A stretch of 64,000 nt of DNA from Oikopleura dioica. Its lineage: Eukaryota > Animalia > Chordata. The position numbers and the translations under genes were made by a program. This document shows, piece by piece, positions 23,574 through 62,420 of the stretch; position 1 is the first letter of the stretch; every line of letters begins with the position of its first letter. The DNA is taken from NCBI GenBank assembly GCA_907165135.1, contig OU015569.1, forward strand, positions 8,556,001 through 8,620,000, written 5' to 3'. The notes beneath the pieces were generated by a model, which did not search any database, was not told the origin of the DNA, and saw nothing but the letters and a program-made list of their open reading frames with translations.

Positions 23574-24139
23574 GACGATTTTCAACAACATTTTTTTGGG
23601 AAAATCCTGGTCCCCCTTTTTCATTCCCTCAATAGATTCTTCGTATGAAAAAACCCCCCTCACCCGGTTTAGAGCCGGTGTGCCCAACTCAATATGCCCA
23701 GAGGGTGTTTTAAAATTTTTTTGGATTACCCCGTATATTTTGCCCTAGGGCATAAATAATGTGGGCACACTGTATATATTTAGAACTCTCGTGATCTAAC
23801 AAGTACGGGGAGCACAAAATTGTGACCTCTTCAAAAGGTCATCTGGGGTCACGTGACCTCAACCTTTCCGAGAGGTCACAATATTGTGCTCCCCATACTT
23901 GTTAGATCATGAGGATTTTAAAAATATATATTTTGCCCACATTATATATGTCCTAGAGCAAAATATAGGGGGTAATCAAACTGGTACTTTTGGAACTTCC
24001 GTCACATGCAATGACGTCATAAGTTCGAAATTTTGCCAGTATTTCCGACTCATCTAGCATAACTTTTTACGCTCTTTCTAATGGGCCTATAAAAAAGGTG
24101 AACCAGGATTTCCCTCAAAAATCCTTATTGAAAATCGTC
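23574..24139. mobile_element. Degenerate foldback/MITE-like element (~565 bp, nested inverted arms)
   Basis: Outer arms 23574-23623 and 24091-24139 (GACGATTTTCAA..AAATCCTGG) and inner arms ~23724-23830 and ~23870-23977 are imperfect reverse complements. No clear TSD. Confidence 0.8.
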
Positions 24140-51260: not shown

Positions 51261-52501
51261 TTAAATTCCTTGAAGAACTATGGCTCCTCCTCCACCGCCG
51301 CCGTTGCAAATTGCCGCAATGCCAAATTCGCCAGGCTTAAGCCTCATTGCCAAGCGTGCTGTGATTCGTGCGCCAGAACAGCCAAAAGGATGACCAAGCG
51401 AAATTGCACCTCCGAATGGATTCATCTTTTCACGAGGGACATTGAACGCTCTTTCCACGGCGATAACCACGGATGCAAAGGCTTAATATAATTTAAACCA
51501 GTTTCGAATTCTACAAAGGGAAACCTTCATTGATCTCCCAGTGGTCAATTTGGTTTGCAGTAAGGTTATACTTCTTGAGAGCCTTTTCAATCGCGAAGTT
51601 GACTGCTTCAGTAAAATTGAATGGCTCCGTCGCTGCATCTGCGTGGCCCACGATTTGAGCGACAGGGTTAAATGAATTTTCGAGAACAGCGGCTTCTGAT
51701 GAGAGTAAAAGTGCGCAAGCGCCATCTCCCAATTTTGACGTGTTTCCAGCGGTAATTGAGGCAACCTCCGGTTTATCAAAGATTGCTCGGATCGCAGAGA
51801 AGTCTTGCGGCAATTTTTCGAATTCCTCGTCACGAGAAATCGTTTTGCCGTTGACTTCGATAGGAGAAACTTCAGACAAACATCCGTTAGCCCATGCTTC
51901 TTTTGCTCGTTTGTAACTCATTGAAGCGTACTCGTCTTGCTCATCCCTAGTGATGTTCAGTTTTTGAACAATTTTCTCGGCGCAAGTTCCCATGTGCATG
52001 CCAGTAAATGAGTCAGTTAGCCCATCGTTGTTGATGAGATCGATCATTCTATCGCCTCCATATGTGGGTTCTCTACGACTCACTGCAAAGGGAACAGATG
52101 ACATTGATTCTTGCCCACCGGAAAGAACTAACTCGTTGTGCCCGGCAATGATTGTGTCGTAACCTAATTGAATAGCTTTCATTCCGGATGCGCAGACCTT
52201 GTTCACTGTAGTGCAAGGGGTTCTGTTGCAAATTCCAGCATTCAAGGCTGCTTGTCTTGCTGGTGCTTGTCCTATGCCACCTTGGAGAACGTTTCCAAAG
52301 AAGACTTCATCTATTTGGGTCGGGGCTACTCTTGTCCTTGCCAGAAGTCCTTTTATCGCCAAAGAGCCTTAATTTGCAATAGAAACTGATGGTTTTCCTC
52401 ATTTTACCTAGTTCTGGAGCCGAAAGGGTCTTCAAACGTCCCTGAAAAGATCCAAGTGGAGTGCGGTTGGCGGCCACAATAAAGACGCTTCTTTTACTCA
52501 T
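51261..52501 (-). CDS. ACAT1: Acetyl-CoA acetyltransferase (thiolase II), ACAT1/ERG10-type, copy B (2 introns, intact)
   Basis: [54 protein letters not shown]|[18 protein letters not shown]. Confidence 0.93.
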
Positions 52502-52554
52502 CTTTCTGAACTGAACCCATGTTGGAGAAGGCTGGAAAAATGAAATTTGTACAA

Positions 52555-54410
52555 TCAGGCGGTAAATATTTGGGCAAAGTAGTCGATATCAAAATCAGAA
52601 CTGAGAGAGTCACGTGAAAGTAAAACAGCAGCGGGCTCTTTCTGCTCGCTCAATGCGCGTGGTCGATGCTCTTTGACGGAGACGAATACATCTTGTTGTT
52701 TCGCCGCGCGAATGAAGCCCGTGTTGCTCGACACTGTAATTGCTTTGTGCGTTTCTCCAGTGCCAAACGCGATTTTTGCTCGATCGGAAATCCTAGCTGA
52801 GCTTGGAAGCGAAGCGATGCGCTCAGATATTTCATCTTCAACTACGTTTACATATTCTTTGAGCCCGGCTGCTCTATTCTTCTCCTTGGGTCCAGCGATC
52901 AGTGAGATTATGCGATCGAACTCCTCCATTGCCGTTTTTGAAGAAATGATTTCTTTGTCGCGGATAAAATCTATAATTGGTTGTAGGCGGTCAATAGGAG
53001 ATTTATCTCCCAGTTCGTATTTTGACGAAATAGGAGATTTATCTCCCAGTTCGTACTTTTGCGAAATAGGAGATTTTTTTCTCCCATTGACCGCGGTCAA
53101 GAATCTTTGAACTGGGAGATATTTTTTCCTGCGACAGGGGTCGTCCAGTGCCCCTTACCTGGGGGCTCCGCCCCCTAGGTCCTAAGATGCCGGGGTCTAG
53201 TCTAGGGTTACTTAGGGTTACCTTCAGTAACCCTAACTAACCCTAGCCTATCCCCCTCGGGTGAGGTTGTTCCGTCATTTTGCCCAGTGCCCCTAACACT
53301 AACCTCAATTTTAGAAAGATAAATACTTACAAAAAAGGAATTAGGTGCTTCTTGATTATATTCTGATAAAAATTTTCTCATGCCTCGAAATCTCCCAGGT
53401 AGAAAAAATCTCCTATTTACCACAATTTGCGAAAAAACGAACTAGGAGAAAAAAAAATCTCCTATTTCGTAAAAGCACGAACTAGGAGATAAATCTCCTA
53501 TTTCGCCAAAAAACGAACTGGGAGATAAATCTCCTATTGACCGCATATCACCCTATAATTTCGGGGAGGACGCGCTTTTCTCGCTCGTCGATCGCCATCT
53601 GATCGAGGTGAATAAGAAACTTGGATTCCTCGCAGCGGAACTCGTAATTCGCAAAGCCGTTCGACAAGTTAGAGACTAGCGTTATCATCGTGCATGTGTC
53701 TAAATTCACTTTCAGCGAGCTCTGTCGAGGAAGCATTTCTTCGAAACTATCTTCGTCGGATGATTCGTCCGCTATTTCAAATTCAAGAAAAGGCTCTACA
53801 TCTCCGTATACAAGAATTCCGTACTGCTCTAGTTTTTTCTTTAAAGAAATTAAATGCCGGGCTTTATCAAGAGCAGAATACCTTGATCTTGAGAGGAACG
53901 ACATCGTGAAAGTAGAACTCAATTTTTGGCGGAAGAAACTCGTGATTGACATTTGCACCCATTAGCATCTTCCTCGCAGTGGCAACTATTATGTCTTCGC
54001 CATCCATGTACTTTTGAATGAGGGCTTTTCCCTTTCGTGAGCAGGACTTGATCCATGAACTTGAAGTGACAATGTCAATCTGTATCTTTTCCCCGTCGCC
54101 AAGTTTTGCTGAGTAGAAAATCTTCGTTACATCTTCTATTCTTTTCATTGCCAGTTCATAAATCGCCTCTAAGGACTTTAAATTCGACGACACCAGATGC
54201 TGTGGATTCAGCTTACTATTACCTATAAGCGACCTTTAAAAATTTCTGAATCATGTAGCTATTTGACGAGTACCTCAGAAACTTGACTTCTGAATGCACT
54301 TTATTTTCAAATTTCTTTGACCCTTCGATGTGACATAGATTTTCCCTGACGTTTTCCAGCAGTCTGCATCCCTTTTCTACGTGATCAAGAAGTTCTTGAT
54401 CAACGGACAT
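52555..54410 (-). CDS. C7orf25: UPF0415 / C7orf25 homolog (DUF1308), with a transposon-derived GG-AG intron 52971-53552
   Basis: IEG..K...SEVKFL; VNLDTCTMITLVSNLSNG; EREKRVLPEII|DFIRDKEI; LIAGPKEKNRA; FGTGETHKAITVSSNTGFIRAAKQQ; HRPRALSEQKE. Confidence 0.9.
52979..53552. mobile_element. 574-bp non-autonomous TIR element, 8-bp TSD CTATAATT, GG termini (Merlin-like)
   Basis: TSD at 52971-52978 and 53553-53560. Perfect 32-bp inverted repeat 52987-53018 / 53513-53544, and the terminal 14 bp match 11/14. About 3 subterminal tandem units per side; no ORF. Confidence 0.93.
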
Positions 54411-54606
54411 TCTCGAAAGGCAATCTTAGAGTATAACTTTCTATTTCCTCGATAAGAAACTCGTTTATAAGGCAATTGGGAATTAAACTATTGCACAGAA
54501 AATATAACACCATTAGGAGGGATCTAAGAGGGGCGATCTTGTTATCACAGATCACAATGAGCAAGAGAGTGAGTAGGTCTACTGTTCTGGATCTAGCAGT
54601 TAAAGA

Positions 54607-55984
54607 TTAAAGCTCTTCGTGCTTGAAGTCCTTAGAGACGGCGGCCATCGACTTGACGATTCCGGCGGTGGAGGGGTAGTAGTACTTGTATTTGTTTTAT
54701 TAGTTCGTTTTCCCTAATCGAATCAACGTACCTTGTACTTCTCATTTCCCCCAACATTAATCTTGTCCTTCATAACATTTCCATCGGTGTCCAAAAACAG
54801 AATTCTAAAACAATCAGCAAAACAATCAGCATGGTCTGTGGAAATACCTGGGAATGTAGCCGCCATCAGGGGTGTATTGCTCTCCTTTTGGCTCATCGTC
54901 ATCAAGAGCATTAACCATATTGAAATTGCTTGAAAGCTTTTCAATTTCTTTGTCTCCGGCAAACTTGGGCTTGAGCTGTTTGCAGGCCCCGCACCAACTG
55001 AAAATATAGATAACTAAATTAGTTAAATAGTTAAAAAAAGTAGTTGTTGGTAGGACGATAATGTTTTCATGTTCTGGTTTCGTAAAGAATCGCTGATTCT
55101 CTAGAATCTAAGTTTTTATCAGACCGATTTCGACTATTTGTCAGTTACTTTCAAACCACTTTAGGAGTAGTTGGGTCCGATGAGCTCATATTTACAGGTA
55201 TTTACTTATTGTTGAATATTGAAAACCATTTTAAGGAATAGTCCGATCCTAGAAAATGTGGAAATGGACTCAACTGAATCTCTATCCAGAGAAGAAGAAG
55301 GAAACTTCCTTGAAAGAGGACGTTCATCAAATGAGAGCAATAGTTGCTCACGTTCGTACTGCTTTATGACAACTGCTTTACTTGCTTTTACTGCTTTAAA
55401 ACAACAAAATAAATCTACTAAGAACTTAATCTTGGAGGAGATTTATATTAACAGTCAGGGCTTCTGATTTCAGTATTTTTGGCCATTTGCGTCATAAACA
55501 ACGAAATTGCGAGCCTTGACTGTATGTGTTCGTGTTGGTTTGAAACAAGGACTCAAATGCTAGATAAATGTGTAAACGAAGTTAATTGTGCTAAGTTGTT
55601 CTTCGAACTTCGAAATGATATTTTGATCGCAAGGCCTGGAAAATCTCAGTCGAATGAACTGCCGATTAATCAACATCGAGAGCTACTTTGACAATTATTG
55701 CTAATCCTAGCATGAAAGTAGCACACTCGGTCAAAGCGGGTGACAAATTTTCGGTGCAACAGTCCTCGTTCTGGGCAGTGATAATCCTCATTTTTCGGGC
55801 AATATAATTAGAAATTCTAATTCTGCGTGTCTAGAGACCTTTTATGAATCACGAGCATTGTTGCCTTGCCATTCGTCTTGGAAGCTTCTTTCGCCTCATC
55901 TAGCGTAACCCAGTCAATGTTATCATTCCATCCATGACTGTCAGCAGCGAGTGCAGCTCCGAGAAAGATGCTCCAAAACTTCAT
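54607..55984 (-). CDS. TXNDC12: ER thioredoxin-domain protein TXNDC12/ERp18 (AGR family)
   Basis: Signal peptide [25 protein letters not shown]|[20 protein letters not shown]|ILFLD, YK|YYY, ER-retention KHEEL*. Confidence 0.95.
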
Positions 55985-60337: not shown

Positions 60338-61509
60338 GAGTGGTCGCCTCTCGCCCAGATCGCCTTCTGCCCAGATCGCCTCCTGCCCAAGATCGCCTCT
60401 CGCCCAACTTGGGCAAGAGGCGATCTGGGCCAGAGGCGATCTTGGGCGAGAGGCGATGAGAAATTATTTTCAATGAAAACTTTAAATGACTTGGGCTAGA
60501 GGCGATCTTGGGCAGGAGGCGATCACTTTAAACTAATTCCATTAGCCATCACGTGGACTGATTTTTTTTCATTCAACCTCTCAAGAAGACGATTTTTCCT
60601 CAACTAAAGTCGAAAACACCTCCAAAATAGAACGAACCGATATTGAATCATGCAAAAGTCATGAGAAACCTTCTTTCCGATCAACACAGGGATTAGCGCC
60701 CTATTTCCTGCTCTTTCCAGTTTTGATTAGTGATTCGATTATCACTTGAACTCTTCTGAATTTTCATATTCTGAAATAACCAGGTAATGAAGCTACCGGA
60801 TACTTTTGAGTTCGCTGGGTTGATGTTCAATACCACAACAACGAGCCAATTTGAAAGAAAGGGGAATGACGGTCTGTTAGAAACTCTCGATTTTCAATTC
60901 AAGTCGAATAAATTCTACACTTCTTGACGAAACGATCCTCAAGATAAAACGCTTGACAACAGCCACCAGTTTTGAATCCGTCATTATTTATAAATAAATA
61001 TTAATATTATAAATATTATTATAAATATATTATTGATAATCAATTCATAACTCTTGTTATCTTTTAAATAAAAGTTATTTTTGAATGCAGTCCGTGCAGT
61101 CTTCTTTGATGAGAGCGCATCGCAAACAAAACTGGAAAGAGCAGGAAATAGAGCGCTAATCCCTGTTTTGATCGGAAAGAAGGTTTCTCATGACTTTTGC
61201 ATGATTCAATATCGGTTCGTTCTATTTTGGAGGTGTTTTCGACTTTAGTTGAGGAAAAATCGTCTTCTTGAGAGGTTGAATGAAAAAAAAAATCAGTCCA
61301 CGTGATGGCAGAGGAAGTTTAATGGAATTAGTTTAAAGTGATCGCCTCCTGCCCAAGATCGCCTTTCGCCCAAGTCTTTGATAGTTTGCTATGAAAATAA
61401 TTTCACATCGCCTCTGGCCCAAGATCGCCTCTTGCCCAAGTTGGGCGGGAGGCGATCTGGGCAGGAGGCGATCTGGGCAGAAGGCGATCTGGATGAGAGG
61501 CGACCACTC
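60338..61509. mobile_element. 1172-bp non-autonomous Mutator/foldback-like element, ~385-bp TIRs, 9-bp TSD GATAATTGC
   Basis: Identical GATAATTGC at 60329-60337 and 61510-61518. Termini GAGTGGTCGCC...GGCGACCACTC. Arms 60338-60725 and 61127-61509 are near-perfect reverse complements. Subterminal ~16-17-bp GATCGCCTCYYGCCCA arrays. Confidence 0.95.
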
Positions 61510-62420
61510 GATAATTGCAATTGAATTTCAGAAATGATCTGAGAAAGAACTTCTCACTGAGAAGCTCCTGCGCCTGTTGAAAATGAAAGAATCTACCCTT
61601 CTCTTTAATAAATATAATGAAAAATTTTTTTGTTGTTAACCTCCGGAAACCTCTTCTTTTAGGATTATCATAAAAAATGATTACTAGTGATTACTTTCTC
61701 TGCAAAGTGCAATATAAAAATTCTAAATTTATCACTCGGTTTATACTCACAATAGGCAGGCTTCGGACATAAAAATTCATCACCACGATCAACTCATCAT
61801 GGCGAGACGAGACTAAACTCATTCGAAAGCTCTTGAAAAGGACTTTCATACGGGCGTTTGAAAAATGTTTCCAATTTCCCGGTTACGAGTTATTTTCTAA
61901 TTTTGCCGATAGGGTCAGATAACTGGAAACAGGGAGGATATTCATTCATTTACCTATATCATATGGGCCGTATGAAAGCCCTTTTCAAGAACTTTCGAAT
62001 AGACCTACTCTTGTCTCGGTGCGAGGATTGTAAAATTCGTTTTTTACGTCCGAGGCTTTACAATAGGGATTATTTCGCCTTGAAAAATCTAATTTCGAGT
62101 ATATAGTTCTATTAGCAGAAACGGTCAATAATGCTCCGATTCGAAAAAAACGGAATTTCGATGAAGTGCAATTTTCCCACGTCGATGTTTATCACGTTTC
62201 ATTCAGTCCAGAGCTCCATTCAGATGTTCCGTTAAGTTTATTTTATGTTTTTGTGGAAGACTCAGCCGAGTGGAGCTAGAGTGTGGCGCTCCACCGCGAC
62301 AGCGCCACGAAAGCTAGAAAGAGCGCGCTCGATTTAGGTTCTGAAGTGTATCGACTATTTACTCAGAAGAAGAAAACAGAGTTTTTACCCAAGAAGTCCA
62401 GAGAAAACATAGAAAACGAG

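Follow-up and report, generated by a model that had tools for sequence, protein, structure and literature searches.

A young and polymorphic transposon insertion in the last coding exon of a C7orf25-type gene of Oikopleura dioica, and its possible fate as an intron

We analysed a stretch of 64,000 nucleotides from the larvacean Oikopleura dioica (assembly GCA_907165135.1, contig OU015569.1, positions 8,556,001 to 8,620,000; hereafter the window), in which a 574-bp DNA transposon interrupts the last coding exon of a minus-strand gene of the C7orf25 type. The element is a cut-and-paste transposon that duplicated 8 bp of its target, and the insertion is young and polymorphic, as other animals of the same lineage have the intact exon. 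Transposition, recency and polymorphism can be read directly from DNA, and from there we infer what becomes of the transcripts. The likeliest reading, to which we give an even chance, is an ordinary insertion allele, whose main transcripts would be truncated or frameshifted and which is possibly leaky. The original prediction, made from the letters of the window, had gone further and proposed that the transposon is in itself a new non-canonical GG-AG intron.

The element was found exactly where the original prediction had placed it. It is bordered on both sides by the exact 8-bp direct repeat CTATAATT (52971-52978 and 53553-53560), the target-site duplication (TSD), and it ends in terminal inverted repeat (TIR) arms of 105 nt. 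Each of the subterminal repeats of about 36 nt within the arms contains the palindrome GGAGAT-nn-ATCTCC. A 32-nt terminal motif pointed out earlier occurs exactly twice in the 64 kb, once per end and in opposite orientation, with 0 copies expected by chance. No long open reading frame (ORF) is present in the ORF listing for the element, which is therefore non-autonomous, i.e. a miniature transposable element with inverted repeats (MITE). Folded as RNA, the whole insert is predicted to form a single hairpin of great length (-292 kcal/mol, z = -15 compared with shuffled sequences), with a stem of more than 100 bp that begins at the first base of the element and stops 8 nt short of the AG at the far end of the insert. 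A structured RNA gene within the element was considered and rejected; the search against Rfam returned no significant match, only insignificant ones of a microRNA-like kind.

The host gene has, by its domain profiles, the architecture of the C7orf25/UPF0415 family, with DUF1308 colinear across the insertion site. The piece upstream of the element matches positions 1-45 of the Pfam profile DUF1308 (PF07000) with 28 bits and the downstream piece positions 48-162 with 118 bits, while an earlier exon matches DUF5614 weakly. DUF1308 has been classed as a PIN-like domain (PMC5499597), and a recent description of the human C7orf25 protein makes it an mRNA-export adaptor of NXF1 (PMC13369676). The coding strand of the interrupted exon reads ...CCC GAA ATT ATA G ^ GGTGAT...CAACC AATTATAG ^ AT TTT ATC, where carets mark the borders. 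Reading into the element gives ATA GGG TGA (Ile-Gly-stop), a stop two codons in, whereas deletion of 53552..52971, that is, of 582 nt comprising the element and one TSD copy, gives ...VLPEIIDFIRDKE... and leaves the frame open to the natural stop. The reference annotation divides 52555..54410 into a model of 241 amino acids ending at the TGA of the element and a separate model of 124 amino acids after it. ORFs and Pfam profiles thus agree with the earlier description of an element within C7orf25 coding sequence that causes an immediate stop on read-through, and the GT one base inside the element is out of phase, as had been stated.

The polymorphism was revealed by DNA with the empty site. Over positions 52300-54700 we compared public DNA and RNA reads, namely two oligo-dT RNA runs (X5 and X6), one plankton metatranscriptome (X1) and one DNA run (X30). 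A contig of 5350 nt from X30, a run with the same species label, matches 52300-52970 and 53553-54700, with a total of 12 differences, and joins 52970 directly to 53553, so that 582 nt are skipped and 8 letters fit either side. The contig is ungapped over 53553-54700 and keeps the other introns of the gene; it is therefore genomic DNA and not cDNA. Moreover, the 90%-identity cluster of the reference 124-amino-acid product includes an ORF of 255 amino acids (P0014) from a metagenome assembly in ENA. The contig of this ORF (L003; 1041 nt, reported in 3 samples) aligns with 98.9% identity to 54074-53553 and with 97.0% to 52978-52452, with an overlap of 8 nt. Both an intron of 43 nt (53881-53839) and the beginning of the adjacent thiolase gene lie on it, so it likewise is genomic DNA with an empty site. 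The empty allele that the original prediction had asked to look for therefore exists in two sources and is exact to the base, and its presence in DNA of a second animal of this species as well as in an environmental contig shows the insertion to be young and polymorphic. Filled and empty alleles differ within the exon by 6 synonymous changes and 1 non-synonymous change. The linked single-nucleotide differences include 52912 (G when filled, C when empty), 52866 and 53614 (A when filled, G when empty). ORFs found only in the interrupted allele are recorded from the reference and from no other source, which is not proof of their absence elsewhere.

The insertion is real in the reference material. 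Of the 31-mers sampled from 52700-53800, DNA run X25 contains 95% and three other runs from its study 73-79%, all of them exceeding the 48% that the flanks alone would give. For a DNA run with another organism label (X29, organism B) the figure is 60% against the same 48%, and the insertion, or else a closely similar element, may be present in this run. The reference 124-amino-acid product is encoded near 8.6 Mb of contig OU015569.1 of GCA_907165135.1, which has a length of 12,959,145 bp. In the supplementary table for the Okinawan assembly OKI2018_I69 the X-specific region measures 12.9591 Mb, and chromosomes 1 and 2 and the pseudoautosomal region have other sizes (PMC8008620). The median Nanopore coverage of the X-specific region is 137, compared with 258-261 on autosomes and pseudoautosomal region, and the assembly was made from one male (PMC8008620). 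This places the locus in the X-specific region, so that the sequenced male, being hemizygous, carried the interrupted copy only.

We found that no intron stood at this site before the insertion, as the original prediction had assumed. In a sister Oikopleura lineage (L001, GCA_977009715.1) one continuous ORF of 231 amino acids runs across the exon. The exon minus the 582 nt aligns with it over 232 codons without a gap, in agreement with the claim that removal is scarless and restores the frame. The amino-acid identity is 83%, and the proportions of non-synonymous and synonymous differences (pN 0.10 versus pS 0.74, the latter saturated) point to strong purifying selection on the host gene. More distant relatives from marine metagenomes, like the sister lineage of appendicularian kind, are also uninterrupted (...VLPDIIDFVKGKK..., ...VLPDIIPFIKDKEW...). 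An entry of the element into an older intron was rejected, given an unbroken exon at this point in the relatives and an exact empty allele. The features of the locus are listed in Table 1.

Table 1. Coordinates of the interrupted gene, the element and the candidate splice signals (positions in the window)
Feature	Positions	Strand	Basis and remarks
Host gene, C7orf25-type (DUF5614 + DUF1308)	52555..54410	-	ATG at 54410, stop 52555-52557; ORFs and Pfam
Split exon, downstream part (from DFIRDKE... to the stop)	52555..52970	-	DUF1308 profile positions 48-162
TSD copy, downstream on the coding strand	52971..52978	.	proposed AG acceptor in its final two bases on the coding strand (52972, 52971)
Non-autonomous DNA transposon (MITE), 574 bp	52979..53552	.	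termini 5'-GG...CC-3'; missing, like one TSD copy, from both the X30 contig and L003
TIR arm	52979..53083	.	partner of 53448-53552; 105 nt, 91% complementary (repeat search)
Central 65-nt palindrome with telomere-like TAGGGTTA units	53192..53256	.	within the module at about 53110-53352 (repeat search)
TIR arm	53448..53552	.	periodic subterminal repeats of about 36 nt inside (repeat search)
Read-through TGA stop	53548..53550	-	also the end of the annotated 241-amino-acid model
Competing canonical GT donor	53550..53551	-	1 nt inside (AGG^GTGATA); with the AG at 52971 it would remove 581 nt and shift the frame
Proposed GG donor	53551..53552	-	first two coding-strand bases of the element, exonic AG before; register k=0
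TSD copy, upstream on the coding strand	53553..53560	.	AATTATAG on the coding strand; exact 8-bp direct repeat; 8-nt overlap at the empty-site joints

Scarless removal of the element together with one TSD copy is not evidence for splicing, as the same is true of every insertion. Because of the 8-bp duplication, nine cut registers would give the same mRNA (GG-AG, GG-TA, AG-AT, TA-TA, AT-TT, TA-AT, TT-AA, AT-CA and AA-CC). The GG donor and the AG acceptor in the TSD that the original prediction had named do exist in the sequence as register k=0, but they are one of nine equivalents, and to single them out is a choice. In this register (TTATAG^GGTGAT...AATTATAG^AT) the exonic AG precedes the donor, which corresponds to the signature of the G[ACG]-AG introns of O. 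dioica, with a probability of 6% by chance. Register k=-2 (AATTAT^AGGG...CCAATTAT^AG), with YAY (here TAT) directly before the donor and again as the final three bases of the intron, corresponds to the AG/AT signature of Fritillaria borealis (PMC13326754), a fit that concerns the sequence only. When the element was dropped in silico at every position of the long ORFs of the window, an exact GG-AG register arose at 6.2% of the positions and any G*-AG register at 12.3%. No frame-preserving GT-AG pair is present near the ends of the element, and the only near-exact alternative uses a poor GA donor and would add one codon. Native donors nearby show little beyond G^GT and a weak context, and the GT inside the element fits this pattern.

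The transcript data come mostly from a divergent lineage. In the RNA runs X5 and X6 every read at the locus is 90-95% alike, and the reads are partial matches to conserved parts of the exons only. These 2026 runs, deposited with the same species label, are from another cryptic lineage than the Okinawan reference, and the species label alone is therefore unsafe for choosing RNA for this genome. The plankton metatranscriptome X1 contributes one unspliced contig of 244 nt at the locus. In the predicted fold the stem ends 8 nt from the AG, which would leave nearly no single-stranded room for a branch site and would bury the donor as well as the likely branch region.

A low-copy MITE of 574 bp recently entered the last coding exon and broke the ORF at the DNA level. 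If the result is an ordinary insertion allele, transcripts retaining the element would encode a truncated protein of 241 amino acids without most of DUF1308, while use of the native-looking GT one base inside together with the AG of the TSD would shift the frame; some exact removal may occur and would make the allele leaky. Such an allele could persist as it is young, laboratory culture relaxes selection, and loss of the gene need not be lethal. In its favour are DNA of the same lineage with an empty site, the restriction of interrupted ORFs to the reference, the native-like GT, the G*-AG register to be expected at 12% of exonic landings, the predicted burial of the branch region, and the two models that remain in an annotation prepared with RNA hints. 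The last point is weak evidence against splicing, since the gene may be poorly covered or poorly expressed; that annotation drew on RNA-seq hints, and 11% of its introns are non-canonical (PMC8008620). Further observations weigh against an ordinary insertion allele. Apart from the element, the interrupted allele has no other decay, and an adult male without an intact copy of a strongly constrained gene is easier explained if the allele still works. The acceptor (...AATTATAG^) resembles the AT-rich native acceptors nearby. The G[ACG]-AG introns make up about 11-12% of the introns of O. dioica according to PMC8008620 and PMC4122922, which also report that non-canonical introns are enriched among new introns. 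An exonic AG before the donor, as at our candidate, is conserved in the non-canonical and GA-AG introns of this species (PMC7072748). Its U1 snRNA has the same 5'-terminal N6-methyladenosine signal as that of F. borealis (PMC13326754), and in F. borealis MITE insertions are removed as non-canonical introns (PMC11282704, PMC13326754). The signal in U1, the exonic AG, the AT-rich acceptor, the tolerance of non-GT donors and the viable hemizygous male all favour splicing.

These are the points that support the possibility of a nascent intron, to which we give an appreciable probability, though short of even. A spliceosome tolerant of non-GT donors would exactly remove the element and one TSD copy, the TIR hairpin bringing the ends together and the exonic AG^G and the AG of the TSD serving as signals, so that the allele stays functional and a presence/absence polymorphism of an intron results. 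The register k=-2 would in addition match the YAY^AG...YAY signature of F. borealis, where introns with TIRs and TSDs were born from MITEs. Yet chance alone yields a register of this kind in 6-12% of landings, a canonical GT competes from 1 nt inside, donor and likely branch region would be buried in the stem of more than 100 bp, and the annotation leaves the exons unjoined. Neither do the RNA data help it, X5 and X6 being from the other lineage and X1 giving an unspliced contig only, and the filled allele is known from the reference, compared with two other sources for the empty one. In its full form, namely a presence/absence intron segregating in a chordate, in which animals with only the MITE allele make normal C7orf25 mRNA by removing the 582 nt as a hairpin-clamped non-GT intron, we regard the idea as possible at about one chance in three. 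As a contributing process compatible with the other explanations, excision may be repaired across the 8-bp TSD copies by microhomology, which would restore the exon exactly. Some empty alleles would then be revertants, and somatic or germline reversion would ease the cost of exonic insertions. O. dioica is without classical end joining and relies on microhomology-mediated end joining, which is reported to be active, and cut-and-paste transposons have been discussed as sources of microhomology (10.1101/2023.05.09.539028). No base is gained or lost at the empty sites, which show the 8-nt overlap, and several copies of the family in another animal indicate that a source of transposase may exist. 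Nevertheless, we think such a contribution improbable: an autonomous partner was not found in the collections searched, and the empty haplotypes carry several linked single-nucleotide differences from the filled one within 60-110 nt of the site, which fits never-occupied ancestral alleles better than recent revertants. An assembly artefact, in which a chimeric long read or a polishing error put the element into the exon, would account for an interrupted allele on record from the reference assembly only. However, the clean 8-bp TSD and the intact TIRs mark real transposition, and the 31-mers of X25 and its three sister runs go beyond those of the flanks, which makes an artefact very hard to believe.

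Several known systems resemble this locus in part. The MITE introns of F. borealis (Henriet et al. 2019, as described in PMC11282704 and PMC13326754) share with it the larvacean host, a miniature TIR element, TSDs at the exon-intron borders and ends that can pair. There too, removal needs recognition of non-GT/AG sites by a U2-type spliceosome, as it would here, and the neutralisation of MITE insertions as non-canonical introns is established for the spliceosome of that larvacean (PMC11282704). In F. borealis, however, both long and short RNA reads demonstrate the splicing of fixed introns in the tens of thousands, while we deal with one polymorphic insertion known from DNA. Duplicated U2AF paralogues accompany the introns of F. 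borealis, and its TSD is a short TAC-type repeat instead of 8 bp. O. dioica is known for GV-AG introns and not for the AG/AT or AG/AC introns of F. borealis. With the G[ACG]-AG introns of its own genome (Denoeud 2010 via PMC4122922; PMC8008620; PMC7072748) the candidate shares a donor of G plus non-T after an exonic AG and an AG acceptor. Those introns are mostly tiny (median about 49 nt), GA-AG and fixed, whereas the candidate has 582 nt, is GG-AG and polymorphic, and contains a GT 1 nt inside.

In introners, described from Micromonas, Aureococcus and dinoflagellates (Huff 2016; Gozashti 2022, PMC9860276; PMC12130899), one splice site comes from the end of the element and the other from the duplicated target, as would be the case here, and the co-option of the TSD as a splice site is established for them (PMC9860276). 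As in introners, a transposon with TIRs and TSD lies inside a transcribed gene. Introners are present as many near-identical copies serving as introns in many genes, with support from RNA, while the present family has about 10 copies and non-canonical signals; neither the 64-kb window nor the JGI metagenome contigs contained similar copies serving as introns in different genes. Exonic TIR elements that are partly spliced out are also said to be known from maize, where Ds and dSpm insertions in wx, adh1 and bz, studied by Wessler and colleagues, reportedly give leaky alleles and not true introns. Their splicing is said to be usually imprecise and to use canonical sites inside the element. The maize alleles resemble ours as non-autonomous TIR elements in a coding exon with candidate splice sites close to or at their ends, through which most of the element or all of it can be removed; rescue by splicing is known for maize only. 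Our literature search found no paper showing a transposon-born intron in O. dioica.

The copy number of the family bears on how much it could explain. In run X30 the summed word depth is 480-830 over the arms and 68 over the single-copy flanks, i.e. 7-12 times higher, which suggests that the TIR family has about 10 copies (about 7-12 by depth) in the X30 animal. Over the module at about 53110-53352 the summed word depth reaches 1e4-1e5, hundreds to thousands of times that of the flanks, and more than 1400 X30 contigs match this central module. The element is therefore a low-copy shell that encloses a far more abundant, separate repeat module. Within the module, the palindrome with its TAGGGTTA units sits between the 14-nt direct repeats CCAGTGCCCCTtAC and CCAGTGCCCCTaAC, and one plankton metatranscriptome contig matches only this central repeat of the element. 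The 64-kb window holds no second copy of the element, scans of JGI metagenome contigs for the TIR and the subterminal motif yielded no related copy, and searches with ORFs that read through the TIR matched only C7orf25 relatives. The original prediction had seen in this family a direct mechanism for the non-canonical introns of the lineage. This part of it is not supported, because a family of about 10 copies, an estimate from the depth in a different animal, is too small to explain thousands of such introns on its own.

Also the superfamily of the element is a candidate label. TSDs of 8 or 8-9 bp are common to Merlin, hAT, P and some MULEs, so the 8-bp TSD of our element agrees with Merlin/IS1016 and equally with the other three. 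The element has the termini GGTTG... and GGTGA..., and such GG ends we take to be Merlin-like. The TIRs of hAT transposons are short and start with YARNG, and their targets follow the consensus nTnnnnAn. The termini GGTTG and GGTGA differ from this in spite of the similar TSD length, and of the two consensus positions CTATAATT matches just one. With MULEs the element shares its long TIRs and their periodic subterminal repeats, but MULE TSDs are more often 9-11 bp. Neither an autonomous partner nor a transposase was found in the collections searched.

How introns are gained in animals, and where the many young, rule-breaking introns of Oikopleura come from, is still argued, and both reverse splicing and transposon insertion have been proposed. 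The locus is a natural experiment, as the same exon occurs with and without a transposon in one species. Because of the X linkage males show a single allele, the gene is strongly constrained, and the animal is amenable to culture and injection. What is distinctive, and makes this a good test case, is that an empty allele is documented, that the reference male was hemizygous for the X and that the host gene is strongly constrained. Should carriers produce the exact mRNA, a permissive spliceosome would neutralise exonic transposon hits and create introns, the Fritillaria model would then also apply to the larvacean most used in the laboratory, and the birth of an intron by DNA transposition would be seen at a polymorphic stage with the ancestral allele at hand as a control. 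If they do not, this is one more deleterious insertion allele. In either case it carries a warning, since exonic transposons that look exactly removable are expected by chance in about one landing in eight.

Some minor observations concern the surroundings of the element. In the 5' half of the host gene a likely first intron of only 34 nt lies at 54200-54233 on the minus strand (GTCGCT...CCACAG). The annotated product of 241 amino acids implies 137 nt of introns, which the simplest model with introns of 34 and 43 nt does not fit; an exhaustive fit of the exon-intron structure to the length of the annotated product gave an ambiguous outcome, and the 5' gene model is therefore uncertain. The neighbouring thiolase locus (minus strand, from about 52501 of the window and downstream; 3429-6375 of contig L002) has an annotated product of 2622 amino acids that contains the Thiolase_N/Thiolase_C pair twice. 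The model seems to join adjacent genes, possibly neighbours in an operon, into one.

Other inverted-repeat structures are present elsewhere in the window. Palindromic, TIR-like structures of 566 nt (23574-24139, with an inner palindrome of 260 nt) and of 216 nt (61803-62018) were seen; a clean target duplication was not found for them and their coding context is not obvious. A MULE-like MITE of 1.17 kb at 60338-61508, located in a stretch without long ORFs, has the termini GAGTGG...CCACTC and a 9-bp duplication, GATAATTGC. Its nested inverted repeats, up to 167 nt long and 98% alike, are made of GATCGCC...GCCCA subrepeats, and like the 574-bp element it thus has long arms with periodic subterminal repeats.

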